From positions 1-52,993 of the forward strand of contig NW_027368008.1 of NCBI RefSeq assembly GCF_046119375.1: 52,993 bases of DNA, given 5' to 3'. The first letter of the stretch is position 1, and each line of letters begins with the position of its first letter. Source of the DNA: Phyllobates terribilis. Taxonomy: Eukaryota. The position numbers and the translations under genes were made by a program. The notes beneath the pieces were generated by a model. It saw nothing but the letters and a program-made list of their open reading frames with translations, had not been told where the DNA came from and did not search any database. Shown here piece by piece: positions 6,721-47,200 of this stretch.

Positions 6721-9700
6721 AGGCGAGCACAAGGCCAAATTGCCAACGATCCGGTTGCACCGTCCCCACAACCTCCTGTTTTCCCTCGAGTTGACGGTTT
6801 TGTTGGGACGATCACTGGGCGTCACCAGCCGAGAATGCCCAGTAGGCGGGAGCAGAGAAGGGCCTCCAATGCCCCATTGCCTCCCGGGAGGCCAATGATG
6901 TTGATAGCCGAGGTTGCTCGCAAGCCATACCAGCTACAATTCGATGACAACGATGTGGTCGAGTGGGAAAACAAGCAAGCCGACCTACTCGTCATCCATA
7001 TCCATATGGGAACGAAGATTGTCAAAAGAGTAATGATACATACTGGTAGTGCGGGGGACATAATCTATTTGGAATCCTATCAAAATCTCGGCCTCGAAGG
7101 CCAACAAAGTTCAATCTCATAGACTTTACGGGGGATTCTTTGAAGGAAAACTCGGGGTCGTCACAATTGACATGATCCTGGGTCATGAAGGTGGCCTGCG
7201 AAGGAGTTGCGCGATCGACTTTTCAGTCACCCCCCTCGCATCGTCTTACAACGTAATCCTAGGAAGATACTCATTAATGCGATCCGAAGCACTGGTGTCA
7301 ATCAACAATTTGTGCCCCAAGTTCCCAACCCAGAATGGAACAGGCACAGCTCGAGGCAATCAGGAATAGTGTGAAACATGCTACATTCAAGTTGAGCGTA
7401 ATGATAAGAAGGCGGTGCACGCAAACCAACTCTAGTTATCATGTTCACTCCGCACTGAAGGCGAGGCAGATCTGGACCCTCGAGAAGCTTCGCGATCATC
7501 TTCGGGGGAAGACACTCCTCCTACCTTCGTGGATGTCATGAAGCATGCTATCTCACCATTTGGCGAGGAAGAAAAGAGGTTGTACATCGACCAAGGGCTA
7601 CTTACAAAAGTCACCAAAGAAGTCAAGGCCTTGTTGGGGACCTCAAAGACGTCTTCTCTTAGACACTAAAAGATCTCAAGGGTATTCCCCCCGAGGTAAT
7701 GACTCACTCTCTTGATATTGATCCGCATGTAAAGCCTCGACGATAAAAGAAGAGAAAGCAAGCAGGCCCTAAAAATGAACGCTGCAACGGTAGAGCTCGC
7801 GAAGCTACTCAAAGCAGGATTTGTAGGACCAGTACAATACCCTACCCGGATCGTGAATGTTGTTATGGTGCCAAAGAAAGATACAGGCAAGTGGCACATG
7901 TGCGTCGATTTCACCGATCTAAACAAGGTGTGCCCCAAAGACAGTTATATGCTCCCAATCATAGATCAACTCGTCGACTCCAAAGCAGGTCACGAGGCCT
8001 TGAGATTTCTCGATGCATATTTGAGGTACAATCAGGTCGCGATGAACCCGGTAGACGCAGACCACGCGACTTTTATAACAGACAAAGGCACTTTCTGCTA
8101 CAGGGTCATGTCGTTCGGTCTTAAAAATGCAGGGGCCACCTTTCAGAGGCTTGCGGACATGGTCTTTCAAGGAAAGATTGTCAAGACAGTTAAGGCCTAT
8201 GTAGATGACATTGTGGTGAAGAGTAGAAGCCAGAAAGATCATCCGAGAGACCTGCACGAGGTGTTCGACACTTTACAAAAAATACGGCATGAGCTTGAAC
8301 CCCAAAAAATGTGTATTCAGGGTCATAGAAGGCAAGTTCCTAGGCTTCCAAATCAGTTTGCAAGGTATACAGGTAAACCCATCCAAAGTCTAGGCCGTCC
8401 TAGACATGAAGGCTCCTCGGACAACAAACAAAGTACAAAGGTTCATGGGGTCAGTAAACTACTTGGGAAGGTTATGTGCCAAGCTTGTCGAGAGGAACTT
8501 ACCATTCTTTGAGATCCTCAAAAAGCCAAAGCAATTTCAATGGACTCCAGAATGTGAAACGGCCTTCGCCAGCCTAAAAGAGCATTTGGAAAATTTGTTG
8601 ACCTTATCGTCACGTGTTCCAGGCAAAGCATTACAGTTATACCTTGCATCTAACTCGCGAACTGTAAGTGTTGTGCTTACTCGCGAGCAACAGAAACCCA
8701 TATACTTTGTCAGTAAGGCACTATTGCCGACCGAAGCCAATATTCATCGGTCTAGAAGACCATATTCACTTTAGTCATGGCAGCACGAAGACTAATGTTG
8801 CACTTTCATGCGCATACTATTCAGGTGTTGACCAAACTACCTCTGCGCGGGATTCTACACTGACCTACTTTATCCGGAAGAATGACTAAGTGGGCTGTTG
8901 AGCTTTCAGAAATTGATACTGAGTATCGCCCTCCGACCATTAAAGCTCAGGCGATGGCTGACTTCATTGTTGAAACAAGTTTTCGCGAGCTCGACAACTC
9001 ACCGTTCTATGCAAACCAACCGTGGAAGTTATACATGGAAAACGCAGTGAATGCTGAGGGTTGTGGCTCGGGAGTCGCGTTGTTCTCACCAGAAGAATAT
9101 ATATGTATGAACACGTGATAACTCTCGACTTCAACGCCACCAACAATGAAGTTGACTACGAGGCTCTGATCATTGGGCTCGAGTTTGCCCTCAAGGAGCA
9201 GGTAGAAGAAATCGAGTGCATTTGTGACTCAGAAGTGGTAGTCCAGCAGGTGCAAGGCATATATGAGACTCTAATAGGAAATCAACCAAAGTATCAAGCT
9301 TGGGTGGCAAGATTGAAAAATACGTTCAAGCATTTCCTCATAACTGCTATTCCCAGAAGTGAAAACGAGCAAGCAGATGGGCTCGCAAGACTAGCTTCGC
9401 AAGCTCAGTTGATCGATGTAAAGTCAGAAAGGAAATCTATGCTGATTTGGTATTGTTCTACTAGCATGAAGGCCATATCGAGCAGTTCGAGATGATGTCA
9501 ATCGACACTCCCGCAGACGACTGGCGAACCCACATCCTAAAGTATTTGTCACAGGAAAACCTACCAGAGGATACTCGTGAGCGAAAGAAGCTACAGGTGT
9601 AGGCAGCACGATTCTTCACATGCCAAGGAGAACTATACAAAAAAGGCATCATGACTCGCGAGCTGCGTTGCTTGTCTCAAGAAAAAGGACAAAGAATGCT

Positions 9701-10664
9701 CGTTGAGTTTCATGCTGGGTTGTGTGGCACGCATGTGGGATGGAGGTCGTTAGTATTTAAGGCCCTCAGACATGGCCATTTCTGGCTCTCGATGCGCGAA
9801 GATGTTGTGAACATCGCGAAGTCTTGTAAAGCATGCCAACCACATGCGCCAGCTTGCCATCAACCGGGGGTAGAGATGCAAATTATGGCAGGTCCGTGCC
9901 CATTCGCAATGTGGGGCCTAGATCTATTGGGGCCTTTCTCGTCAAAGGCGCCCGACCAATTAGAGTTCATCATCGTCGTAATTGACTATTTAACTAAGTG
10001 GATCGAGGCAGTTCCCCTGGCTAGAACAAATGTCCAAGCATTACAGAAGTTCCTTTGGCAGAATATAATTTGCAGATTTAGCCTCCCACAAGACATCGTC
10101 ACTGATAGAGGTCCCCAGTTTAATAAACCAAAGCTCGTCGACTAGTGTAGTGACTTGTGCATCAGACTGAAATTTGCATAAGTGGCGCATCCACATTGCA
10201 ATGGCCAAGTGGAAGCTGCTAATAAGAGTATTGTAACAGACCTCAAGAAGATACTAGACGGGGCGCGAGGTCGGTGGGATGAACAATTACCCCTCGTGCT
10301 TTGGGAAAATCGCACAACCGTTAAGAGAGCAACTGTGGAAACACTGTTTTCCTTAGCATATGGCGTCGAATCAGTCGTACTTGTAGAGCATATATTCCCA
10401 ACTGATAGAATCATACAATACAACGAAGAAGAAATTAGAGAAAAGATAGCTCAAGAGTTACAACTCAGAGAAGAGGCATGCGAGATGGTAGCTATCCGAG
10501 CAGCAAATCACAAGGTAGAAGGAGGAAAACTGGACCCAAACTGGGAAGTTCCCTATATCATTGAAGCCGAGGTAGCCCCATGAGCATACAAGCTAAAGGA
10601 CTGTGCTAGGAATCGCATCGCGAACTCTTGGAACGTGACACGGCTCCACAAGTACTATTCATAG
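6712..10664 (+). pseudogene. pol of the Tat element: protease, RT, RNase H, archaeal-type RNase H, integrase (fragmented)
   Basis: Protease RVMIHTGSAGDI (catalytic D replaced by H). RT WHMCVDFTDLNKVCPKD and AYVDDIVVKS. RNase H QKPIYFVSKAL. aRH ATNNEVDYEALIIGL. Integrase H-H-C-C zinc finger, PFAMWGLDLLGP, IVTDRGPQF, HPHCNGQVEAANK and GKLDPNWEVPY. Multiple stops and frameshifts. Confidence 0.92.
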
Positions 10665-26852: not shown

Positions 26853-29800
26853 TTACACATTCTCGCGAGTAATGAGATCCATGACAGCATGCTTCAGACT
26901 CCCATTGTTCTTCTTCAGAGCCTCCCTGTTCGTCTCTCCATCCTCAAACCCCATTCCGCGCATTTCTTCCAGAAGCAAATCCCACTCAGAGACGTTACAA
27001 AGCTCGTCCAGCGACTTCTCGAAGTCATACTCGTTCTTCTTCAGAACCTTCTTGTTGACCTCCACCTGCTTGAACCCCATCTGTTCAAGCTCGTTGAGGA
27101 GAGCGTCTTCGACTTCGGACTTGGTGGTGGTGTTGTCCTCTTCGATTCTGGGGTAGGTGACGGAGCTTGAGGAAGGTATAGGTTGAGTGGGACCCGCATT
27201 GGAAACGGGGTGGGTGTTGTTAAAGAGAAGGTTGTTATTGAGTAAGTTGAGATTGTATGCTTGCTGGTGGTTCAGCATGAACTGTTGCACTTGCTTGGCC
27301 ATCAAGGGGTCTATTTGGTCAAGTGGGTCGATAGGATCTTCTAGAGGCTCGACGACAGCGTGTGGGGTGTTGTTCTCTGCAGTGCCTTCTGGAGGTAAGT
27401 TTAGGTTTAGGGTGTTTGGGAGTGTTGAAGATGATTCCGGAAACGATGCATCCACCTGTTTTAGCAGAGAAATGAACGAGACTAAGAAAATGGATAATTA
27501 ATGACGAAATAATAGTTATATGCCATGTTATCAAAATCACGAGCTGATCGTTGGCCAACAGACTCGTGAAACTCGTTTTCTGCATTTTTGGAGACTATGC
27601 CTTGTGATTGAAATTTCATATTTATACATTTAAAAACTAAACAGAATTGAATGAGTTACTATAATAGTATATGGTATATAAAACATAGGTTTTATTAACA
27701 TAATTAAGCTAGGAAGATTTTACAACTTTCACAAAAAAATATCAAATCAATTTCTTTAGGCGTTTATATATTATATTTACATATGTTGTATTCATATTAT
27801 ATACTCCCGATACAAATACTTGTCACACAAACAAAGATAAAGGAAAAAGTTAGTAAAATGACAGGTACTTGTATCCAACAAAATTGCTCTAAATTAACAT
27901 GTATTTATATCCAGAGGAAGTATTAATTTATTATTAGTTTAATACTTTAGTAGACTCTTCCATCCAAGTGAAGAGTATACTCTCGAGTTCCATAACCTTG
28001 TTTATATGTTAGTATATGGTATTTTTTTTACATACAAATTTGAGATTAAGAAACTAGGAACAAATTAGAAGTGTAAATATGTAATTAAGAAGAGGTTAAC
28101 CTGAATTAGAACCCAAACACGCTGCCCAAACTTCTGACCAGAGGATGAGGCCATTTTCCAGTAGGAGATGTACCGTCCAGGTAATTCGGGTGCAATGAAA
28201 TCAACTGCAACATCAACTTCATTTTCTGGATAGAACCCAGATACAGGAATCTGTTTTTTTTTTTTTTTAATTTGGTTAAAGAAAACAATGTCAGAAAGCC
28301 AAAAAAAAAAGAAGCATACTTACTAAATAAACTTGCTGAATTAAGTACCTCGATTCCAACAGAGCTAGTTGGGCTGAACTTATCTCCACCAATCCAGACA
28401 AGCTGAGTACCGTGAATCCATGGGAGATTGCCATTGTTACGCATTCTCCAGATCTTGGTGAAACGGGTATTGGGAGCCATAATTGTACCATCCATAACAT
28501 TGACATCTAATATGAACCGGCTGTCAAGCTTTGGTTTCAATTGCTTCATATGCTTACCGAAAAATCTCAGTGGAGGTGGAGGGTGACCCCAAGGCTTCGG
28601 CTGCGGCAACTAAAATGATTAAGGAAGGTAAGTACTTCTATCTTAACTCAGTAATTTATGTTAGAAGTTAATAATAATGTCCTGAATTTATGCTATTTTG
28701 GTAGAACCCTTAATCTCCGAATCTCCCACCCGGAAATTTGTTAGAGAATCTCCAATTTTCATATATATTCATTTAATTAAGTCCCCTTTTCATCAAGACC
28801 AACATTAGCTTAAATAGGAAACCTATCAGCTGTAGTATGAACATCAGTTAGTGGAGTGGGTACACTAATTTCAGGAATTAAAACTGATAATTATAATTAG
28901 CAGAAAGTATTAAGTAGTTAATAGTAGTAGATTATATTTTGGTTCTAAGAATAAATCATATTTCAATTCAGTGTTAAAGCACATACTGAGACTGTACTCA
29001 TTATTACTGAATTGAGAACATAGAAAAATGGAGGTTCTCATTAATTTCCTACTTTTTGTGACAATTAGTTGTTTCCTTAAGGTTAGATATAAGGGTCCAT
29101 TCGGCAACACCTAGATGGAGTTTTTTTCCAACTACGAATTGGGATATGAAAATTTTCAGAGAAATTAGATGAAATTTGTGAAAGGTAAATTAAAATTTCT
29201 CTGACATAGGAGTAGATAGAATTTTGCTCACAAAAGGTGGTAGACAATGACCTAGATGGACAAGCTGAAATTTACCCAATTTCAGCTACTTCTATTTGAT
29301 TTTAAACATTGCAAAACGGACCCTTAAGTGGGTTTTATCACACCTTATATATGTCCAAGAGAAGAGTAGAGTAAGGGTAAAAGTGTACGAAAGTACTCAC
29401 ATATGGGCTACTCTTGAGGGACCATGGGTAACGATAGGGAGCTGGAAAATCAATCCTTATATAATCAGAATCTTTACCCATTCCAATTTGCTGAAAGCAG
29501 ATTTTGCATAAATCATAGTCCAATTTCCTGCAAGGAATATTAACTACCATTATTTACTCCGAGTAGCAAATTGATATAAAAGAGAATGGAGGGAGGGAGT
29601 ATTATTATTACAGTTTGGATTTGAAGCGAGGCCCAGTGATAGGATGAACACCACATCCATCACACTGAACACCTCTGTGGAAAATGTTATCCTTAGAGAA
29701 CATAGTGGGTGCGTGTTGCATAGAAAGACCACCAAATGGGCATTCACTGGTTGTACTTCTTTTTCCTTCCTCCTTTGTAACTCCAAAAGGTTTCATTTCA

Positions 29801-31823
29801 GCTTCTGAAGTAGCAGCAAAACCAGCAGTTTCTTCTTTGTTAATAGCTTTTCTCTTTGCCGCCTCAAGCCTACGTGCATAAATCTTCTGCAAATCTTCTG
29901 AAGATGCAGTTTCTTTACCAGAAGAAGTTGCAGATGCAAGCTGTTTCCTCTGAGCTTCTAAAGCAACATGCATAGCTAGCATGTCCATTGAGTTAGGGCA
30001 ACCACTAGGCTTCCTCTCAACCTCCCCAAATTGTGGATGAGGGCCCTCCTGTTAGGACACTAGAAAGTCTCAGAATATTCATACTGGCAAGAAGAAGAAA
30101 AAAAAAGAGTACAGAAAAATGGAGATTCTCCTCTAAGTATGACTTTTCAGGAATGGATATAGAAATGGCTCATAATCATACGGCCATACCTGTTGTTTGG
30201 TATATCAGTATATGGATATCAAGTTGATATAATCATTTTTATTAGGATATCACTGCCTCTTATTTATTTTAAATATTGCTTTTTAACCAAACTCCTTTCT
30301 TCTTGTTGATGAATACCATGGTTGTTCTCAAAAATATCAACCAATCTATATCATACCAAATGCAAATATAAGATATCAATCTCATACCTATAGAAACTTC
30401 AGTCAGAAATCCAGAAGAAGACATGAACGAAATGAAATCTATCACCTAGTCTTATAAATGTAAGTGCTACCTATATCACTTTGTGCACATGAATAAAATG
30501 ATCCCTATCATAAAAACAAACTAAGGATGTCAGTTTTTCATATGCTAAGATTTAGGTATCTTGAAGACCAATAGTCATAGCTATTAAATCAAAAGGAGTA
30601 CAACTCAACAATCTTAGCAAATTGATACGCAAGTTTCTTGATATGGATAAATAAGACTTTTCAGAGAAACTAAGAGAAAGATAAGAGGAACTCAATAATC
30701 TTTACCTTTTTGTTCTTCTCTGAAGCTGAAGCAACATTTACTTTCTCATTCTTGTGTGCATTTAAGAAGGAATCGGCAGCAGAGGTAATACCCTCAACAA
30801 ACTCACCAAGTATGGGAGCACTAGAAGCAGTCCTAGAAGCCACTTGAGCAGCGAGATCCGAGAGATACACACGAAGCGGCTCAGGCATTGTTTTAAGAAG
30901 ATCAGCTATACCAGGATAGATATTATCCTGTGCAGGAAGTGGAGTAGATGTACCACTAGACTTGACAGAAGCTGCAGATGAAGTGTTGATCTTGACACTT
31001 ATTCGCACTGGATTGAGGCCTTGATTTAAGACATCATGCAGATCTTCATCATCAACCAGTGCAACGATATCATCATCTTCATCTTCATATGTCATCTCCA
31101 ATTCAGATTCAGGAGTCAAACTGAAGAGAGAGCGGATTTTGGCTCTCAGACCCTCAAAATCAAGCTCCAATTGCTGGTTTTCGTTCACAGCAGCATTGAA
31201 ACGCCTAAGCTTGTTTTCATATTTCACCTGAAACACACAGACAAAAGTAATTAGAACAAGCACAAAGAAAGCTAGATGGTAAAGGTTTAACCATATTAGA
31301 CCAACGCTCATAGCTCAATAGGTAAGGACTGTTAACCAAGCAAAAATTGTTACAATTCTTAATTCTGACTTCAACAATTACTGTATCAAGTTATTTTAAG
31401 CTGAGTAATTCAATTATCCTATTTTATATCACACTCACACTTGATTGATACTGTTTAAATTATTTGAAACAATTTCGGCCAGAGCCAGCAACTTTTTTCA
31501 CTTCAGCAAGTTATCAGTACCACCAAACCGGAAATAGTTCGTAAAATCAAGAAAATCGCAATGATCAACACAATAAAAGAGAGAATCCGCAAAGAGAAAC
31601 CTTTTTCCACCGACTTAAACCATAAACAGAAAAATCCAGAGCGAGAACCCCTTGAACGGATAAAAACAGAAAGAAAATCAAACGCGCTGAACAAATAATC
31701 AAAAGCACGCACAGCAACAACAACATGCAAGCCACAAACTCAAAGGCAATCAAACACAAAACTACCAGAAATCAGTAAAATGGAGATGGAAAATCGAACC
31801 TTGACAACCACAGAGGACGCCAT
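26853..31823 (-). CDS. NBR1: NBR1/Joka2 selective autophagy receptor, 707 aa
   Basis: Exons (minus) 31823-31800, 31227-30706, 30048-29612, 29527-29401, 28609-28349, 28250-28101 and 27455-26853 join in frame (2124 nt). PB1 domain (VVVKVKYENKLRRF...YEDEDDDIVALVDD), ZZ finger (CDGCGVHPITGPRFKSK...YDLCKIC), FW domain (FTKIWRMRNNG...FGQRVWVLIQV), two UBA domains and an AIM-like WDLL. Confidence 0.95.
29093..29323. mobile_element. Tourist-like MITE in NBR1 intron 4
   Basis: TIRs gggtccattcggcaa / ttgcaaaacggaccc with TAA/TTA flanks. Confidence 0.65.
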
Positions 31824-34800: not shown

Positions 34801-35679
34801 GTTCCTGATACGGTTTCTCAGCTTGAGATATGGGTCAAGGACTATGCGCGGTAGTGCTTGGACTTTAATTTTAATATTCGAGAGCCGAGAGTCCTCCCAA
34901 AAAATTATAGGCTGGCCATTTCCCACCAACCATTGGAAGCCATTTTTGAACTCTATATTAATTTACCATTATCAAGATTTAATTTGTTTGTTAGTTTCGA
35001 GTTTTAAAAAGACCCTTGTTTTTAAAATATTTAAGTTCGATAGTTTTAATAGAGATGTTATCAGGAAGATTTTTCTCATATGAGCTTTATTTGTAGGATT
35101 TTGTCCATGTTGAACGATTTTTGAATATCCAATCTCTCATTTCACTTATTCTTTCGGATTTTATTCCAATCAATGAGTGGTGGAGTGATAAGGACCTTTG
35201 TTCCAAAAGAAATTTCTATTAACTTAGTCAATCTCGGCATGAATAATGCAAGGACATCAATATTGGTTTGTTTTAAAGAGCTTTTACAAAAATGGGTTTT
35301 TTATAGATAACCGACAGGATGTCAACCTGCACGCACAACCTGGACGACAAGTTTTCTATGTGCGAAAAACATGCACATTCAATCTAGGCGTGCACATTAG
35401 TTTACATTTAGCCACTTTTTCCGAATCCCTTTAATATTTTCCTATATATAAGTTTCATTATAGATGACAAAAGAAGATGAAATTTAGGTGTTTGAACTAT
35501 GAACTCAGCTCTCTTAGAACTCGTAGATATGAAATTAATACTTGGACTATACAGAAGTGTACAAATGAAACTGACATCGTTTTCCCATTCAAGCCAGCAA
35601 CTTTTATAAAAAGAATCACTAGCTACACAAAAACAGAATACAAATCTTGAAAAGAGTTACAACACTACATGTGAGATTA

Positions 35680-36030
35680 GAACATCCTCAGTAGTGATAT
35701 TCATTTTGAATATCATAGTTAATTTTAAAATATTATTTTAATATTATGATACTCTTATATCACAATGGTGATATTTGTCTCAAATATCATAATGAACTTT
35801 TTTTAACTTCTCAGTTCTGTCTATTCTTATTTAGAGTTTAAAGTTTCTTATTTAATTATTATACATAGATTAAATATAGGACCAATGTGTAAGACTTTGT
35901 GTAATAATGAGTATCATACATATGATACTCAAATATAATGATTATATTGATAAAATAAAATTAAAAAACTCTTATACTTATCTTTAAATAAAATGCTAAG
36001 ATTCTTGGAGTATCACCATTGTGGATGCTC
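35680..36030. mobile_element. Tourist-like MITE
   Basis: TIRs gaacatcctcagtagtgata / tatcaccattgtggatgctc with TTA TSD at 35677-35679 and 36031-36033. The empty-site sequence is visible in the paralogous copy near 44105 (gagattatgacaa). Confidence 0.85.
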
Positions 36031-36482
36031 TTATGACAATGAGCATCAATACATGCAAGATTATGAGAATGAACGTCAACTTTCATAAAAAGAATCACTA
36101 GGCCATTTTCTAATTCTTCTATTAATTTATCATTGTCAAGATTTGTTTTGTTTGTTAGTTCTGAGTTTTCAAAAGACCGTTGTTTTTATAATACTTAAGT
36201 TGCATAGTTTTAACCCAGATGTTATCATATTCAACAACAACAAAATTCAACAACAAAATTCATAGGAATTTTATTTGTAGGATTTTGCCCATGTTATTTT
36301 TGGATATCTACTCTCCCATTTTTCTTATTCTTATAGATTTTATTTCAATCTCTGTTACAAAAGAAATTTCTACTAACTAGTCAATCTCGGCATAAATAAT
36401 GCAAGGACATCAAAATTGGTTTGTTTCAAGGAGCTTTTACAAAATGAGTTCTTTATAGATAACCCAACCCACAAAGGTTATA

Positions 36483-36737
36483 CTCCCTCTGTCCCTTATT
36501 CTGCTTCATGATTCTTTTTTTTTATATTTGTCGATGCATGTTTTCTATCGCACATATCTTTAAATATATTAACCTAAAAATCTTATTTTGATATTCTTAA
36601 AGCATTTATTGAGACGAATCAAACAAGACCACTCACAACTATGTTCTTAATTATATATTGGAAGATATTAGCAAGATTTCCATAAGCGATGAATAGTGTC
36701 AAAAAAAAGGAAGAAGAGCTTAAGGGGACGGAGGGAG
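36483..36737. mobile_element. Stowaway MITE
   Basis: TA-ctccctctgtccctta ... taaggggacggagggag-TA. Confidence 0.9.
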
Positions 36738-36764
36738 TATATAGGTTCTTCAAATTCTTGTAAT

Positions 36765-37152
36765 TGTTATAAAACGAGTAAGACAAAGTGTCTTAATCTA
36801 AGACTTTAGATTATTAAGACAATGTGTCTTAATATTACTTAAAGGACCACTAAAATAAATTTAAATTGGAAAAGAGAAAGGGAGAGATCAAAAACTTTAG
36901 ATGAGTATTCTTGCTCTTATTTTGGTGTATCCTTTACACTAGAAAATGCCTCTATTTATAGGCAAACATGGGGAGAGAAAACTTAAATTAATCCCCATAA
37001 GATTAGGAGGTAAATAAGGTGAATAATTCACCATTAGAATATCTACCACAAATCTCATATCTACTACAATCATTCAATTGTTCATCAATCATCTAGATAA
37101 AGTTGTGGTTGATATAATTTCTTCATTGGTAGAATTTTCAATATTCACAACA
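36765..37152 (-). repeat. 3' LTR of the Bianca element (388 bp)
   Basis: TGTTAT...CACAACA, adjacent to the PPT; aligns with 43038-43939. Confidence 0.88.
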
Positions 37153-37396
37153 CTCCCCATTGAATATTCACCTTTGAACTGTTGCGGGATATGGATGGGT
37201 GTTGCCTCATTAAAACCTTGTCAGGAAAAACTCGGTGGGATAAAAAAAACCCGATCGAAGGAAAAAGAGTACAATTGTGAATCCCGTTATATGCCTTGAT
37301 GTTGCCTCATTAAAAATCTCGTCAAGCAAAAAACATGTGGGAAAAAACTTGATCGAAGGGAAAAAGAGTGCAGCGCGCATGAAGCTCCCCATGAGA

Positions 37397-40300
37397 TCAA
37401 TGAGTGTCTATGAGTCTGCACATTCCAATCCTTGATCCTAATTCTGCAAACTTCTTGGGAGTTAATGACTTTGTAAACATATCATCCAAATTATCATTCC
37501 ACCGGATCTGTTGAACATTGATTTCTCCAACTTCGTCCAATTCATGGGTAAAGAAGAATTTGGGTAAAATGTATTTTGTACGATCTCCTTTGATATACCA
37601 TTTCTTCATCTGAGCAACGCATGCTGAGTTGTCTTCATAGATCATCGTTGGTCCGTTGATGATAGGCCTCATTCCACATTCCTTCTGGATGAATGTGATC
37701 ATTGCTCCTTCTCTTCATGCCTCGTATAGTGCAATCAACTCGCTTGATTTGATGATGTTGCAGTCACCGTTTGCTTATTTGATCTCCATGATATGGATGT
37801 GCCTCCATATGTGAACACATAACCATTTTGTGACTTGGCTTTACGTGGGTCAGATAAGTATCCTACATCTACATATCCGACCAACGTGGCATCTCTTTGA
37901 GCACGGTAGAACAGTCCCAGATCATGTGTTCCCTGAAGATAGTGAAATATGTGTTTGATCCCATTCCAATGCTTCCTTGTAGGAGTGGAACTAAACCTGG
38001 ACAAAAAATTCACTGTGAAAGTAATATCTGGTCTTGTATTGTTAGTTAAATACATTAAAGCACCAATTGAACTAAGATGTGGTACTTCAGGACTGAGGAC
38101 TTCTTCGTCCTCTTCTCGAGGGCGAAACTGGTCCTTATCAACACTAAGGGATCGAACATCCATGGGTGAAATCAAAGGATGTGCCTTATCCATATTAAAT
38201 CTTCTCATGATTTTTTCAGTATAATTAGATTGATGGACAAAAATTCCTCCATCTAGATGTTCAAATGTAAACCAATACAGAGCTTAGTTTGTCCAAGATC
38301 TTTCATCTCGAATTCTTTCATCAAATATTTTGCAGTTTCTTTGAGTTCATGAGGAGTTCCCACGATGTTTAAATCGTCAACATAGAAAGCGATGATTGCG
38401 AACCCATTTTTGGATCTTTTGACAAAAACACACGTGAATGTGGCATCATTCTTATACCCTTCTTTCATGAGGTATTCACTAAGGCGGTTGTACTATAACC
38501 TTCCAGATTATTTTAATCCGTACAATGACCTCCTTAGCTTTATATCGAATAACCCTCGAGGCTTAGAGTTGTTAGACTCGGATAGTCTTATTCCATCTGG
38601 AACTCTCATATAGATGTCTGTATCAAGTGACCCATATAAGTATGCGGTTACGACATCCATAAGACGCATATGTAATTTCTCAAATACAGTCATGCCGATG
38701 AGGAACCTTAATATGGTTGCATCAACCACTGGAGAGTATGTTTCGTCATAATCAACTCCGGAAATTTGGGAGAAATCTTGGGCTACAAGCCTTGCCTTAT
38801 ATCTGACGATTTCATCCTTCTCAATTCGCTTTCTTATGAAAACCCATTTGTATCCTACTGGTTTTACACCATTTGGTGTATGGACTACAGATCCAAAAAC
38901 TTCTCGCCTTTCTAGGGATCTTAATTCTGCCTGGATGGCTTCTTTCCATTTTGACCAATCTTTTCTTTGACAACATTCGCCAACTGATTTTGGCTAAGCG
39001 TCCTCATCCCCCAACACAACATCTATAGCTATTGAGTAGGCAAATATGTTATCAATAATGACATCTTTTCTATTCCATTGTATACTTGTGTAAGTATAAT
39101 TAATGGAAATTTCATAATTATCGATATTTTGATCGTTGTTCAAAATGTTATTTTCTTGTGAGACATTTTCATTTTCAATTTCGCTGCCTTCATTATCTTT
39201 CTTAGTAGTCATTGTGGATCTCCTATCATACCCAAAGAGTCCTTTGATTTTCTTGGTTTCAAATTCTTTGAACCTAGAAGTCTTCCACGCTTTCGACGCA
39301 TCGTGGACTCATTTTTTATGGACGCTTCAGGCTGTCCAATGGGTATTTCAATCCTTGCTGGAGCATTTTCTGCTGTCACTTTCTTGGTATCTATGAATGC
39401 ATCGGGTAGCTGATTTGCAACATTTTGCAGATGAATAATATTTTGTACCTCTTGCTCACACATTTTTGTTCTTGGATCAAGGTGAGACAATGCTATTGCA
39501 TTCCACGTGATCTCTTTTGTATTTGGATCAATCATTTTCTTTTCTCCCCCTAAGTTTGGCAAAGTTCTTTCATCAAAATGACAATCAACTAATCTTGATG
39601 TGAATAAATCACACGTTATAGGTTCAAGATATTTTATAATCGATGGTGATTCAAAACCAACATATATTCTCAATCTTCCTTGTCGTCCCATCTTGGTGCG
39701 TTGTGGTGGAGCAATGAGGACATATACAACACATACAAATACTTTGAGATGTGAGATGTCTGGTTCCTTTCCAAATACTAATTGTAATGGAGATTGCTCA
39801 TGGTTCGCACTTGGTCTTAATCGGATAAATGTTGCAGCATGTAATATAGCACGTCCCCATGCTGATGAGGGAAGTTTAGACCTCATAAATAATGGTCTAG
39901 CAATTAATTGTAATCTCTTTATTAAGGATTTTGCAAGACCATTCTGTGTGTGAACATGAGCCACGGGATCTTCCACATCAATCCCAATTGACATGCAAAA
40001 ATCATTGAAGATTTGGGAAGTGAATTCTCCGGTATTATCAAATAGGATTTTCTTGATTGTGTAATCCAGAAAATGTGCTCTCAATCGGATTATTTGAGCA
40101 AGGAGTTTAGCAAATGCATTATTTCGAGTGGACAATAGGCTAACATGAGACCAACGTGTAGATGCATCAATTAGCACCATAAAATATCAAAATGGCCCGC
40201 AAGGTGGAGCTATTGGTCCAAATATGTCCCCTTGGATTCTTTCAAAAAATGCAGGCATCTCATTTGCTATTTTACTTGTGGAGGGTCTTATAATAGACTT

Positions 40301-40902
40301 TCCAAGTGAGCATGCAGTGCAGTTGAGTTCATTTGGTGATAGAAGCCTGATATTGTTCAGTGGATGTCCAAATGAATTCTTTGTGATTTTGTGCATCATT
40401 ATCATCCCTAGGTGACCCAAGCGTTCATTCCATAATGTAAACGAAACTTTATCATTTGACTTTTGTCTTATTACTGCATTGACCACAAGTGGATGAATAT
40501 ACGTATAGTATAACCCGAATGTTTGGCTTGACATTCTTTCAAGGATCCTTTTGAGGCTAGATTCATGGCTTATGATGCATAAATATTCTTTTCCATTTTC
40601 ATTTGTGGTTTCCACATTAAACCCATTTTGATGCACGTCTTTAAAACTCAGTAAATTTTTGTGAGATTTACTTGAGTACAATGCATCATTTATTACTAAT
40701 GTTGTTCCGCATGGAAGTAGAACGATTGCTCTTCCGAAGCCTTCGATGAGCTTAGACACTCCCGAGGTTGTAGTGACATTGCCTTCATAGGCTCTTAGGT
40801 GTGTAAAATAATCTTTGTTTCTTAGATTGGTGTGAGTTGTTGCACTATCTAGAAGACATTTCTCCTTCCCATCAAGTTTCATTTTAGGTGGTTCCATGTT
40901 CA
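37397..40902 (-). pseudogene. Copia pol: protease, integrase, RT, RNase H (stops and frameshifts)
   Basis: ORFs 40187-40960, 39209-40180, 38508-38729, 38253-38468, 37735-38208 and 37397-37702 carry consecutive copia pol motifs. Confidence 0.9.
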
Positions 40903-41114
40903 CTATATAAAAAAAAAGTGATACGTAAAATGTTAAAAAAACTTCATATATATTACACAAGGATAGTCATATTATACAAGTACTTAAAGAAAAATATTAC
41001 ACATATAGTTATATTATACATGATTTTATGCGATAACAAAGAAAAAAGGAAAGCATATTATACAATATTATACATTGTGAGACGTGGCATTGACGTTCAA
41101 GACTAGTTCAATCC

Positions 41115-42202
41115 TTAAAAGAGGTATTCATTATCATCGTCAAGGTTCAGAGACAAATTGGTACCTCCTTCTTGGTTAAAGAATATAGGGGTATCCATAT
41201 TTGGCATGTTAATATTTTCAATATTCTCATTCTCAGTGTAATTTGTCTCAGGTGCCTTATCTTTTCCCTTCTCAGTTTGGTACAACCTCACTAAGTGTGG
41301 GGTTGTACGACATAGTCTTGACCAATGATCATTCATGCCACATCTATAACAAGTGGATCTCTGGGAGGGTCCTGCTTGACCCGTCTCGACCTTTGGCTTT
41401 CCATCCCCCTTTGTGCCTTCGTAGCATGGTTGTTGCCATGACCTTTGTTGTATCCTTGGTCACGACCTCTGCCATAGCTGCCACGACCTCCTCGGCCACG
41501 AAAACCTCCAAGGAAACCTCCACGGCCTCCGCGTCGGCGGCCATAATTACGTTGTGCCTTCTATTGGTTGGCGTTTCCTTCAGGCAATCCATTGTCTACA
41601 ATTTTTGCTTCAGAAAGCGTTGTGGAGCCAGTGGGCCTCATATTATGATTTCTCATTAATATTTCACTGTTCTTTTCAGCAACCAATAATACTTTCAGCA
41701 AGTCTGAGTATTTTGTGAATTTCCTCTCCCTATATTGTTGTTGTAACACAACACCTGGGGCATGCATGGTGGAGAACGTCCTCTCCAACATTTGTGACTC
41801 AGTTACTTCTTGACCACATAACTTAAGTTGGGATGTGATCCTGAATAGAGCATTATTATAATCTGATATGGACTTATAGTCCTGGAACCTTAAGTTGCTC
41901 CAATCGTATTGTGCTTCTGGGAGGGGGACCTCCTTTGTATGGCCATAACGTTCATTTAGATTTTCCCACAATACTTTGGAATCATCAACAAATAAATACT
42001 CAGTTTTAAGGCTTTCATGTATATGGTGGCGGAGGAATACAATAGCCTTTGCTTTCTCTTGTGGTGTTGTATTGGCATTTTCATTAATTGTTTGTTCAAG
42101 GCCATTTGCCTTAAGGAGAATGAGGGAATCTACCTTCCACTCGAGATATTTATGACCCGATAAGTCGAGAATCTCAAATTCTCTCTTTGTAATACTTGTC
42201 AT
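41115..42202 (-). pseudogene. Copia gag with RGG-rich tract and zinc knuckle (frameshifted)
   Basis: ORF 41561-42202, then GRRRGGRGGF...GRGGRG and TCYRCGMNDHWSRLC, ending at stop 41115. Confidence 0.88.
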
Positions 42203-42447
42203 TTAAAAAGTTCTACAAATAAAGTTGTAAATATGAGTTAATTAGATATTCATTATTATGCATATATGGATTATATATCATGTGTGAAGCGATATACATG
42301 AATATCTAAAAAGGTGAGTGATCATGTCAATATAGGTGTATCATATCATTTAATGAAAATGATTGTCATAGAGTCAAAAGTATAAATTTAAACAGGGGTC
42401 ATACAGTATAAGGATAATGTAAGGAAAAATTATGTAAGTATACTTAT

Positions 42448-42456
42448 GGCGGGAAA
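42448..42456 (-). promoter_or_regulatory. Canonical E2F-binding motif TTTCCCGCC in the Bianca leader
   Basis: The plus strand reads ggcgggaaa, an exact match to TTTSSCGC. Function is untested. Confidence 0.35.
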
Positions 42457-43037
42457 CTTTAATACCGGTTATTTTCTCTTTTTATCCTTTATAATTACGC
42501 CCCCCTTCTCCCTCTTTTTCACGCGTTCTTATCTTCTTCCTCCACACCTCCATTATCAATCTCTTCTTCCATTTTTCCTTTAACCATTTCCATGGATTCC
42601 GACAAGATTAATCGTCATTTAAGAGCTAGTAATGATCGGTTTTTAACCGAGCTTTTCATTTACCTTGTTCTTATCATGATTACTGTTTTAATTATCATCC
42701 TTTCGATTTGGAAAGCTCCATTTTGAAATCAAGAAAAGTACTTGAAGAGATCTTGAAATGAGAAGTCAGACGAGGTAAGTAAATCTAATATCTTGTTTGT
42801 ATTTTGTTTAGATCTAATAATATGTTTCTATTTTTGGTAAAAATCGTTCTAGATCGAAGAAGAAAATCGAATTTCTGATGTAGAAGATCCCGAGTTTTGG
42901 GCAACTACAGAGCATACTTCTCAAATCGATTTTGTAATAACTCTTGTATAATTATGAGTATGTAATAAAGGAAGTAGAATTTTATACCTTGATGGTTTTT
43001 GGTAAGCGGTGGTTAGAGATTCTTCGTGCTAATAACG

Positions 43038-43939
43038 TGTTATGAAACGAGTAAGACAAAATGTCTTAATCTAAGACTTTAGATTATTAAGACAAGGTGT
43101 CTTAATATTACTTAAAGGACAACCAAAATAACTTTTAACTGTGAAAGAGAAAGGGAAAGATCAAGAACTTTAGATGAGTATTCTTGCTCTTATTTTGGTG
43201 TATCATTTACACTAGAAAATGCTTCTATTTATAGGCAAACATGGGGAGATAAAATTTGAATTAATCCTCATACGATTAGGAGGTAAATAAGGTGAATAAT
43301 TCATCATTAGAATATCTACCACAAATAGGGTTGTTCAAAGTATGGTTTTAACCGAATCCGAACCGAACCGAATAAACCGAAACCGAACCTATGGTAATTC
43401 GGTTCGGTTTTCGGTTTGTATATTTTTGAAGTTCGGTTTTCGGTCCGGTTCGGGTTCGGTTAAAACCGAAAACCGAACCTATAATTTCTAAATGCCTAAA
43501 AATCCCTAAATTAGCTAAAATTCTAAATGTAAAACCTAAATCTAAAATCCCTCCCTCACCTCTCAGACTCGCCAAGCTTTTGAGCAGTTTTTTTTTCCCC
43601 ATTTATTCGGTTTAATATGCACACAAGTTATGTTTAATTTAGAATTTTTAAGAAGATTAAAGCTATATTTAAATTTATTATTCAGTTCATTTGGTTTATC
43701 CGGTTTTTAATAATTACAAAAACAAAACCATAAAACTTTATTCGGTTTATTCGATTAAACCGAAAACCGAACCGAAACCGAACCGAACTAGTTTAGTTCG
43801 TTTCGGTTTTCGGTTGGCATTTTTTCCTAGTTCGGCTTTCGGTTCGGTTCGGTTCAGTTTGGTTCAGTTCGATTTTAACCGAATGAACAACCCTAACCAC
43901 AAATCTCATATCTGCTACAATCATTCAATTATTCATCAA
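43038..43939 (-). repeat. 5' LTR of the Bianca element, interrupted by a hAT MITE and lacking its outer ~64 bp
   Basis: About 20 substitutions in the first ~290 aligned bp versus the 3' LTR by manual count (~7%). Homology stops at ttcatcaa (43939). Confidence 0.85.
43326..43895. mobile_element. hAT-family MITE (570 bp)
   Basis: TIRs TAGGGTTGTTCA / TGAACAACCCTA. Perfect 8-bp TSD ACCACAAA at 43318-43325 and 43896-43903. Subterminal AACCGA/TCGGTT repeats. Absent from the 3' LTR. Confidence 0.93.
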
Positions 43940-44232
43940 CTAAGCTCTCTTCGAACCCATTGATATGAAATTGAAACTTGGACTATTCACAAGTGCACAA
44001 ATCAAACTGACATCGTTTTCCCTTACAAGTTTCATAAAAAGAATCACTAACCACACAAAAAAAGAACACAAATCTTAAAAAAGAGTTACAACACTACATG
44101 TGAGAGATTATGACAACGACCACCAATACAAGTAGCTAAAAAAAAAACGTCACAACACATGCAAATTTATTCGTGTTCGCTTACGCCACCACTTCAGCTT
44201 ACAAGTACATCAAACTGCACCACCAATGAATT

Positions 44233-47200
44233 CTACAGCTGCTGATTGAGCCATGGATCTCTATACCCATTCACCGAAGCACCCAAATAAGCCGAAACAG
44301 AAGAAACCTTCTCCTTCAACCACGACGTACTCCGCGCAACCCCACTCAAACTCCACCTACTCTCACTCTCCTCCTTCACACTCTGCACGCTTTTCGCTTC
44401 CTCTTCAACCAACAGCTCCACCCACCTCTGCGCCATGAAATCCTTGATAGCTTCGACTCCCTGGCTCAGAATCTCGGGCGGGGGTAGCTCGATAGGGTTC
44501 TGTTCCAAGTTGAGCTTGGTTAGGTTCTCCAGTCTACCGAAAGAGTCAGGGAGCTGGTGGATTTGGTTGTTGCTTATGTCAAGTTCTTTTAGGTTGATTA
44601 GCTCGCCGAGTGTTTCGGGGAGTTCTTGTAGATCGCTGAAGTTGCCACTGAGATTTAGGGATTCGAGGTTTGTTAGGCTTCCGATCGTGGTTGGGAGGCC
44701 TCGGAGTTCGTTGAAATGGATGTCGAGTTGTTGGAGGGATTTCATGCCTCCGATTGATGTGGGTAGGCCCGGGAGTTTGTTGTATTGGACGGAGAGTCTT
44801 TTGAGGAGAATCATTTCGGTGCCGATGTTTGTTGGTAAGTACGCGAGGTTGTTGAAACTCGCATCTAGTTCCTCCAAGGACCTAGAAAGATACGAGGGCG
44901 TTTTTGTTATTTTGGTAGAAGTTTCGCCTTACAGTTTGAAATGCGAACAGACTTTAACTGTGAACCTAAACTGTTGTACTAGGATTGTTGCAGCAGTTTC
45001 AACTACACTGATCGTTCCGTTGATGTAGCATTTTTTACAACTTTTTTTAGCTTAAAAATCAAGAAGTTAAAACCTAGAGTACTTTTAACTGTGAACTGCG
45101 AACAAACTTTAACTGTGAACTTTACTATCTAGAAAGATACGAGGGCATTTTGTTATTTTGGTATAAGTTTCGCCTTACTGTGTGAAATGCGAACAGACTT
45201 TAACTGTAAACTTTACTATCTTATATGTGAACCTAGAGTACTTTTTGTGTGAACCTAAACTGTTGTACTAGGATTGTTGCAGCAGTTTTCAACTACACTG
45301 ATCGTAAAAGTTGTGTTCAAGAAGTTAAAACCACTTTTTCAAAATAATCATTTAAAACTAATAATTTCTTTCCAATGGTAATCTCTAAAAATTCTTCCTT
45401 TTAAAAAAAGAAGAAAAAAGAGATAAAAGAATTGTATTTTGAGGGGATGTGTAAGAGAAATTTGTGTGGAACGTGTTCAGTTCTCGAAGAAGAACCTCGC
45501 ACAAGAACTAAAACAACTTCTACTACACATCCCATAAGAATTCTTGAAGATTTAGAAATTCTTGACCAATTAATCAAAAAGAAAAGTCATAAGAATTCTT
45601 TAATCAATTCTTGGGCTGGGCGAATTTATCTTTTTCTCACTTAGTCGAGTAAAAAGCATAAAGGGGACCACAGAAAAATCCTAATGAAAATTCTGGGTTG
45701 TGATTAAATTGTTAAGATAATTCTTAGCTTATCTGGAAGAGAGAAAATAAAAATAAAAAGATACAAGAAATCAAGTCAAGAAATCACCATTGTGAGTGCT
45801 CTTAATGCTTTCTAATGTAAAGTTTACCTGCAGTAACAAATGCTATCAGGCAGGGCGTTTAGTTTGTTCCCAGAGACATTGAGAATCTTCAAGTTGGTTA
45901 ATAATCCAATGGAATCTGGCAATGATTCCAAGAGATTGGAAGAAATATTTAGCTCCTCGAGGCTTTCTAAGCCAGCAACAGAATCTGGTATTGCCTGATC
46001 GGTCAACAGACATCACAAGTTAAAGAAACTTGGAAGATTGACTCATAGAATTGCACAGAAATACAAGAGTTAAGGACTATGGATATCAATTATGACAATT
46101 AGACATCAAGATAATCATATCACATAATTTTGAGACTCTCGCCAACTCAACTCAGTTCAAAGGAATCTTGTTCCTGAAACAAAACCCCTAGAACATGAAT
46201 TTATACATTGATTTTAGAGAAGAACAGTTAATCAAATCACATTAAAAAGATATAGTATATTCTGGAAATCAATAGACTGATAAACTTTCATAGTATAATG
46301 ACCATGCAAAAATATAAATTATATAATAGATGTTTGTTAATGAAGTGTTCAATGCACCGGAAAAAAGAAGGTTATAACAGAAATCATTATTATAATCTCA
46401 AAAACAAAGAAGAAAAACAAGAGATGCATGCTGAATTATTCATTATCCACAGTTGCAGGCTTTAAAAAATACCAAATGCAAGATTAGTGCCTGACTGGTT
46501 TTAAAGGAAAGCACTAATATGGCTTCATTGAATAATAATAATCAAGTCAGAACTAATTGACTAAAATAGAAGCAGATGAAGCCATGCCAAAAATTGAAGT
46601 CAACCCACAAAAAATAAACTTTAACATATGTAATTTAAGAAATGCAGATAAACATCTTGAAGACCTCACCTAACAGTTTAAAGTGTATAATATTCTTCCC
46701 CAGACAAAAAAAAGGCAGAAGAAAAGAAGAAACTAAATCAGATAATGATAACAGCAAACAGAAGGTGATTCAAAATGTAACAGAAACCATATTTCTTTAG
46801 TCTCAGAAACAAAGAAGAAAAACAATGCATGCTGAATTATTCACAGTTGCAGGCTTTAAACAATACCAAATGCAAGATTAGTGCCTGATTGGTGTTATAG
46901 GAGAGCACTAATATGGCTTCATTAAATAATAATAATCAAGTCATAACTAATTGACTAAAATAGAAGTAGATGAAGACACGTCAAAAATTGAAGTCAAGCC
47001 ACAAAAAACATAAACTCAGATAAACATCTTGAAGACTTCACCTAATAGTTATACATGTATCATATTCTTCCCCAGACAAAAAAAAAAGGCAGAAGAAAAG
47101 AAAAACCTAGATCAAATAATGATAACAGCATCACAGTCTGAATAATAGTAGAATTACTAGAAAAGAGAGGTGCAGTGTGTGATGCAATAGGTTTTATAAA

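Follow-up and report, generated by a model that had tools for sequence, protein, structure and literature searches.

Probable separate spliced mRNAs for Gag and Pol, with one leader donor and two acceptors, in Bianca-lineage Ty1/copia retrotransposons

How retroelements set the ratio of Gag to Pol is a classic question, and the known solutions are frameshifting, readthrough, Gag-only subgenomic RNAs (copia, BARE and EVD) and the intron of Ogre elements. The Bianca lineage of Ty1/copia elements is widespread in angiosperms, and the survey of 2019 noted for it only a "unique strategy": both Bianca and Ogre elements have two open reading frames (ORFs) with spacers of 172 and 274 bp on average, a layout that suggests a unique expression strategy, and the region in Ogre is an intron (Neumann et al., 2019, PMC6317226). 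A cranberry preprint describes an "internal UTR" (untranslated region) between gag and pol of a Bianca element, and our literature search found no paper defining splice sites or testing splicing in Bianca. Here, we analyzed a stretch of 52,993 nucleotides (nt) in assembly GCF_046119375.1 of Phyllobates terribilis (contig NW_027368008.1, positions 1 to 52,993, hereafter the window), which carries a degenerate copy of a Bianca-lineage Ty1/copia retrotransposon, and compared this copy with related elements. The comparison makes it quite likely that the gag and pol mRNAs are spliced separately, from one leader donor and two acceptors, and that Pol is expressed in a manner resembling that of foamy viruses.

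The Bianca element and its candidate splice signals

The retrotransposon spans 43323-36765 on the minus strand, to which all coordinates of the element refer. Its two long terminal repeats (LTRs) were located by self-BLAST; each is 286 nt long and the two are 93% identical (5' LTR at 43038..43323, TGTGG...ATAACA, with a TATA-like cctataaatag; 3' LTR at 36765..37050). Pfam matches to the minus-strand ORF pieces follow the copia order, namely Retrotran_gag_2 (PF14223), Pol_BBD (protease), gag_pre-integrs, rve, SH3_retrovirus and RVT_2, and the ribonuclease H (RNase H) piece had no Pfam match. Among the nearest proteins is a Pol from Coffea arabica (P0407); Divo, a Coffea family, has been assigned to Bianca (PMC11782641). 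Directly 3' of the 5' LTR lies the primer-binding site (PBS) CGTTATTAGCACG (43025..43037), which agrees with CGTTATCAGCACG, the PBS common to all Bianca-like loci, and the same 13-mer (at most two mismatches) is found 3' of the 5' LTR in about 30 related loci. The PBS type of Bianca is half tRNA-Ile (PMC6317226), and the assignment of the window PBS rests on that source. The gag frame finishes ...FNQEGGTNLSLNLDDDNEYLF with a TAA at 41117-41115, just as an earlier note on this DNA had read it, and the pol frame opens 148 nt downstream. This layout of two ORFs with a non-coding spacer, which the earlier note had also pointed out, is a published trait of Bianca (PMC6317226) and is shared by 38 non-redundant relatives.

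The relatives' DNA comprised 14 loci obtained by exact-protein look-up (L001-L010 and L091-L094) and 80 plant-DNA loci from metagenomes. Protein searches were run with separate pieces (the protease piece, a Lycium gag and an intact Carex pol, by word search), and representatives were searched with HMMER. Among the 94 loci, L093 and L094 alone are close to the window copy at the DNA level, with about 70% identity.

In the proposed scheme, one 5' splice site in the leader, tens of bases 3' of the PBS, would serve two alternative 3' splice sites. Use of the first acceptor, just before the gag ATG, would remove a long leader intron that is AT-rich and contains many upstream ATGs, giving a gag mRNA, so that leader-spliced RNA would yield Gag and stop there. 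Use of the second acceptor, at the end of the U-rich spacer and 0-22 nt before the pol ATG, would remove leader, gag and spacer together and give a subgenomic pol mRNA, in which the pol AUG would be the first AUG after the junction and from which Pol (protease, integrase, reverse transcriptase and RNase H) would be translated alone, with no fusion to Gag. The unspliced RNA would be the packaged genome. In the window, the AG at 40903 would be the second acceptor, with the GT at 42987 as its partner.

All three signals lie at homologous places in the window copy, and they recur across monocots and dicots. Donor-like sites of the AG/GTAAG type (a slash marks the splice boundary) occur 15-55 nt 3' of the PBS in Lycium, Trifolium, Nicotiana, Carex and many metagenomic plant contigs, as exemplified by TTGAG/GTATGT in Nicotiana, CTGAG/GTAAAT in Carex, AAAT/GTAAGT in Trifolium and TTCAG/GTGAAG in Lycium. 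The corresponding candidate in the window, CAAG/GTATAA at 42987 (CAAG/GTATAAAA, with GT at 42986..42987), is located 37 nt 3' of the PBS, a position like that of the donors apparently used in L047 and L077. A donor score of at least 7 bits was obtained for 39% of the PBS sites listed, compared with 8% of control windows (rough P-value = 8e-6, Mann–Whitney test).

Upstream of gag, nearly all of the 20 related starts listed have a T-rich tract followed by (g/t)atAG or tgtAG within about 12 nt of the ATG. The window has a similar candidate acceptor, tttatttgtAG (AG at 42214-42213), 10 nt 5' of the gag ATG at 42202. The leader introns bounded by the post-PBS donor and the gag acceptor measure 675-1452 nt and contain 11-19 ATG triplets; therefore, the unspliced RNA should be a poor gag mRNA. 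In the window, the candidate leader intron (42213..42987) is 775 nt long with 70% AT and 19 ATG triplets, and the homologous intron of L047, 892 nt long, is missing in L048.

Similarly, a T-rich tract and an AG are found 0-22 nt upstream of the pol ATG in the relatives. In the window, the T-rich tract ...tttttttttatatAG finishes at 40903, and the AG (ctttttttttatatAG/tgaac, 40903..40904) is located 5 nt 5' of the pol start codon (gaacATGG, ATG at 40895..40897), which precedes the protease motif LLDSATTH by 15 codons. This AG was the acceptor proposed in the earlier note, and it appears to be a genuine conserved 3' splice site: L093 has CTACATGTATAG/AAAATG at the same place, and the homologous acceptors seem to have been used in L086, L088 and L019. 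The stretch from the last upstream stop to the protease motif contains a pol-frame ATG in 36/38 loci, and in 25/38 loci this ATG is the first one after the best-scoring acceptor of the spacer (rough binomial P-value = 4e-5). Among the 38 non-redundant elements, the pol ATG follows the gag stop at a median distance of about 190-214 nt. Their spacers contain on average 47% T and 29% A, with T exceeding A in 37 of the 38 relatives, and resemble the U-rich 3' part of plant introns. The spacer of the window copy (41114-40904), described earlier as AT-rich, has 46% T and 30% A and is thus really U-rich; its bases 40905..41114 would form the 3' part of the intron removed from the pol mRNA.

Splice footprints were identified in DNA copies of three independent families and represent two kinds of splice, with ends on GT/AG motifs wherever both ends can be checked. 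Two loci from different samples, L086 and L088 (97% alike), read LTR-PBS-...GGAAAG/ATTTCTACGGGAT..ATGGAGGAG(pol). The full-length relatives L077, L071 and L065 carry GAGAAAG/GTGAGATGG 34 nt 3' of the PBS (GAAAG/GTGAGA) and a pol acceptor ATATATCAAG/ATTTCTACGGGAC (TCAAG/) 21 nt upstream of the pol ATG; compared with them, L086 and L088 have lost about 2.8 kb, comprising leader, gag and spacer, and the missing part ends at this GT and this AG. In another family, L019, which has an LTR at either end and is part of a 53.7-kb contig, reads ...CACTGAAAAG/AATGAGTAGC at 18 nt from the PBS (GAAAAG, then AATGAGTAGC), and its unspliced relative L054, which is 96% identical, reads TTTTTTATAG/AATGAGTAGC. 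The leader splice is represented by L048, from which exactly the 892-nt interval ATTCG/GTAAAA...GCTTTAG/AAATACAAATG(gag) of L047 is missing, the gag sequences of the two being 99% identical. Both splices thus seem to have been used in vivo, and DNA copies descended from spliced RNA would be their indirect record.

Pol would be translated from its own ATG, without any Gag-Pol fusion protein, because the pol ATG is conserved and the frames of gag and pol are unrelated (relative frames 0, 1 and 2 in 14, 12 and 12 of the 38 non-redundant elements, which is a random distribution). Stand-alone Gag proteins of about 330-360 aa were found in Solanaceae, Trifolium, Chenopodium, Spinacia, Carex, Juncus, Curcuma and others, and they end at a conserved place, THL(D/E)V(A/E)DFF followed by a short tail. 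Among the matches returned, dozens of stand-alone Pol proteins of about 1140-1217 aa from many plant families contain no gag domain, and most full-length Pols start at a Met 3-33 residues before CL(V/A)DS(A/G)TTH.

Several points weigh against this scheme. Splicing is deduced from DNA copies and motifs, the donor and acceptor scores come from approximate matrices, and the metagenomic loci are not phylogenetically independent, so that the P-values are rough. No strong donor was found within 90 nt of the PBS in L009 (Curcuma), L010 (Spinacia) and the Arabidopsis-like L053 and L090. L086 and L088 are probably DNA copies of a gag-less subfamily and not transcripts, because their upstream extension passes a TATA-like motif, and the junction of L019 was compared with its relative on the acceptor side. 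Moreover, Pol would need a route into the particle without a Gag fusion. With these points taken into account, we still consider that separately spliced gag and pol mRNAs probably exist. We are somewhat less confident, while still inclined to believe, that the whole Bianca lineage in monocots and dicots makes a Gag-free Pol from a spliced subgenomic mRNA and Gag from a leader-spliced mRNA, keeps the unspliced RNA as genome, and now and then has spliced RNAs packaged and copied that found gag-less or leader-less sublineages.

Alternative routes to Pol and the proposed 262-nt intron

The alternative that survives best is that Pol is made without a dedicated spliced mRNA, either by an internal ribosome entry site (IRES) or reinitiation on the U-rich spacer of a gag-pol RNA, or from a pol-only transcript started at an internal promoter in the spacer, as reported for the Candida element Tca2. 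A conserved pol ATG behind a U-rich tract would suit such a route, for which Tca2 offers a precedent of Gag-independent pol expression in Ty1/copia (PMC2194720). However, the AG before the pol ATG appears to have served as a 3' splice site for the leader donor in two unrelated families, and the same arrangement of AG plus ATG stands before gag, where the leader intron is removed, which fits acceptor choice better than an IRES. As the explanation of Pol expression this route is unlikely, and it may coexist with splicing, the two not being mutually exclusive.

The earlier note had proposed that a 262-nt intron, from a GT at 41164-41163 (GAG/GTACCA) to the AG ending at 40903, is removed from some transcripts to give an in-frame Gag-Pol as in Ogre, with the unspliced RNA yielding Gag. 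The coordinates are accurate, both ends are in phase 1 as described, and joining them in silico gives ...FNQEG-V-NMEPPKMKLDGKEKCLLDSATT, which contains no stop and runs into the protease. The proposal also gains from the conservation of the acceptor, from the placing of the Bianca spacer alongside the Ogre intron in PMC6317226, and from one ab initio gene model (P0405, Tanacetum) that joins gag ...THLD to the same acceptor. However, the donor (41163..41164) falls within 28 nt that are missing from the nearest relatives, L093 and L094; both keep the acceptor (TGTATAG/AAAATG) and apart from this gap align with the window through gag tail, spacer and protease. Across the related elements, neither the position nor the phase of a donor is kept at the 3' end of gag. 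When the acceptor next to the pol ATG was paired with the highest-scoring donor-like GT among the final 200 nt of gag, the two were in phase in 8/36 elements, where 12 would be expected by chance; an in-phase donor-like GT of at least 5 bits was present in 9/36 related elements (the GT at 41164 scores 6.1 bits), and L004 has no in-phase GT at all in these 200 nt. The pairing of 41164 with 40903 is not above chance, and these counts, together with the random frames, reveal no conserved in-phase donor and acceptor at the boundary of ORF1 and ORF2 of the kind known from Ogre. The donor half of the 262-nt intron therefore fails the test of splice-site conservation, and the GT at 41164 is most likely a chance site.

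Two further places were considered for a donor in the related elements. A donor at the Gag motif THL(D/E)V(A/E)DFF (GAT/GTT) was rejected, since the site is weak and Ile, Ala or Ser often takes the place of the Val. No donor was found across the gag stop codon either: these stop codons overlap no GT, which also argues against a Gag-Pol intron. Furthermore, the conserved pol ATG comes right after the acceptor, and stops often stand right before it. Fused, spacer-less or single-ORF copies, which the earlier proposal would lead one to look for, number 0 among the 47 tabulated loci with a gag zinc knuckle and a protease motif (45 relatives, the window and one spurious row). Finally, the predicted fused proteins have species-specific junctions; in these few gag-pol models either the junction differs from species to species or the spacer is read through (P0064 and P0451), and we took them as prediction artefacts or mutated copies. 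A Gag-Pol intron is accordingly very improbable. The earlier proposal is partly supported: it was right on the acceptor and on the role of splicing, in that unspliced RNA would give no Pol and a dependence of Pol on splicing is apparent, and wrong on the donor and the fusion, for the partner of the AG at 40903 would not be the GT at 41164.

That nothing here is functional, the GT, AG and leader signals being chance features of AT-rich decayed DNA and the gag-less or leader-less relatives ordinary deletions, might be suggested by an old and broken window copy, the frequency of GT and AG and the crudeness of the site matrices, but in different families three independent deletions have their ends precisely on GT...AG at homologous landmarks, and the signals are statistically enriched and occur in monocots as well as dicots, so that this explanation is hardly credible.

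The window copy, its relatives and its surroundings

The window copy is dead. An in-frame TAG and a frame change interrupt its gag, and its pol lies in at least six ORF pieces. The gag remnants (41115..42202; ORFs and PF14223) run from the ATG at 42202 through the TAG at 41563-41561 and then a frame change upstream of the zinc knuckle CYRCGMNDHWSRLC to the terminal TAA. The pol remnants (37397..40897) comprise protease, GAG-pre-integrase, integrase, SH3-like and RVT_2 pieces and the RNase H region, and are broken by stops and frameshifts. Such a degenerate copy says nothing about its own present activity, and for the copy itself no functional consequence follows. Self-BLAST with the region 35000-44500 found no second copy of the element in the whole window, and a scan of the window against Rfam gave no match.

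The leader of the window copy is 835 nt long. Within the candidate leader intron, the part 42480-42760 contains a purine-rich stretch, ggaggtgtggaggaagaagataagaacgcgtgaaaaagagggagaagggggg, unlike the AT-rich remainder, and may have been inserted or captured. The same candidate intron has a second strong donor-like site, aagGTAAAT, at about 42663.

Within gag, codons ~112-113 (DFK(T/S)VSEY) show a further pattern, the Val-Ser pair being written GT(A/G)AGT in 9 of the 12 families that encode VS there (GTAAGT in L001, L006, L007, L010, L014 and L021; GTGAGT in L008, L009 and L024). A near-perfect splice-donor core is thus held at synonymous sites from Carex to Nicotiana; this core may serve as an additional donor or reflect coincidental codon use. 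The homologous place in the window, at about 41870, reads ATA TCA (Ile-Ser) and has no GT.

Among the relatives, L004 and L005 from Trifolium repens are young copies, the LTRs of L004 being identical to each other. Both have the same intact 343-aa gag, a leader of 1.35 kb and an unusually long spacer of 510 nt; their pol frame breaks about 39 codons after the ATG and resumes as a 935-aa ORF. In the Arabidopsis-like family of L053 and L090, which may use a different route, the pol frame of L053 begins immediately behind the gag stop with no change of frame, one stop codon standing between them, and P0451 is a copy in which the spacer is read through. The short Logan contigs L091 and L092, considered as possible transcripts, are unspliced fragments with the U-rich spacer before the pol ATG and are uninformative on splicing.

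The DNA around the element is plant DNA. Pieces of an NBR1-like gene at 26853-31311 (minus strand), with PB1, NBR1 Ig-like and two matched C-terminal UBA stretches, look like exons of a gene for an NBR1-like selective-autophagy receptor and help to show this. An ORF with leucine-rich repeats at 44233-44877 (minus strand) adjoins the 5' LTR, and pieces of a Ty3/gypsy element (RVT_1, integrase H2C2 and rve) lie at 7775-10145 (plus strand). The flanks of the Bianca copy are alike, with 74-95% identity (34939-35312 and 36102-36464; 35499-35676 and 43935-44105; 37045-37088 and 43896-43939), and the copy seems to have been inserted into another repeat. A clean 5-bp target-site duplication was not found at the ends of the window element (CTATT at one and ATTAC at the other).

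Comparison with known systems

The comparative evidence suggests a concrete mechanism with exact junctions, that is, one donor, two acceptors and a Pol with its own AUG. If this is true, a Gag-independent route to Pol, convergent with that of foamy viruses, would be added to plant LTR retrotransposons, and the question of how Pol is packaged would be raised. It would also explain why many plant annotations have stand-alone gene models for "Gag" and for "Pol" and why there are gag-less Bianca derivatives, and would give rules for annotating Bianca elements. Should the reading hold across the lineage, the foamy-like strategy would be one not described for plant LTR retrotransposons.

The elements studied here share with Bianca as defined in REXdb (PMC6317226) the two ORFs with a non-coding spacer, the short LTRs and a PBS of the type that this source assigns to half tRNA-Ile, whereas splice sites, a pol start codon and spliced copies are not described there. 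In Ogre (Ty3/gypsy), which has an intron between the gag-pro ORF and the ORF for reverse transcriptase, RNase H and integrase, a few hundred non-coding bases likewise separate the two ORFs and splicing is needed for the downstream enzymes. However, the Ogre intron is internal and its removal restores one fused frame, while Bianca would use a donor in the leader and has unrelated frames and a downstream ATG of its own.

Alternative splicing that sets the Gag:Pol ratio is known within Ty1/copia from EVD/Ale (the shGAG subgenomic RNA; Oberlin et al., 2017, PMC5580714), Drosophila copia and BARE. There, gag and pol form one ORF, from which splicing takes out pol sequence to leave a Gag-only mRNA; in Bianca, unspliced and leader-spliced RNAs would already stop after Gag, and splicing would expose Pol. 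The shGAG type of strategy, with a single gag-pol ORF, an intron in pol and premature termination, was not found in the elements analyzed, which have a conserved gag stop and a separate pol ORF. Tca2 of Candida albicans (Ty1/copia; PMC2194720) makes Pol de novo, by neither readthrough nor frameshifting from Gag, as is proposed for Bianca, but there a promoter at the gag-pol junction makes a pol-only mRNA and a single UGA stands between the ORFs.

Foamy viruses (Spumaretrovirinae) are compared here as a functional analogy, with no claim of membership. They have a major 5' splice site just 3' of the PBS and a dedicated 3' splice site before the pol AUG, and their Pol starts with the protease and is made independently of Gag, as would be the case in Bianca. 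Correspondingly, a leader 5' splice site beside the PBS appears joined to the pol acceptor in L086/L088 (compared with L077/L071/L065) and in L019, and a 3' splice site probably stands immediately upstream of the pol AUG in the relatives and, at 40903 with the ATG at 40897, in the window. Foamy viruses differ in being unrelated vertebrate retroviruses with the order protease, reverse transcriptase, RNase H and integrase, and in having the pol acceptor inside the gag coding region, whereas in Bianca a non-coding U-rich spacer would end in the pol acceptor, and another acceptor would precede gag.
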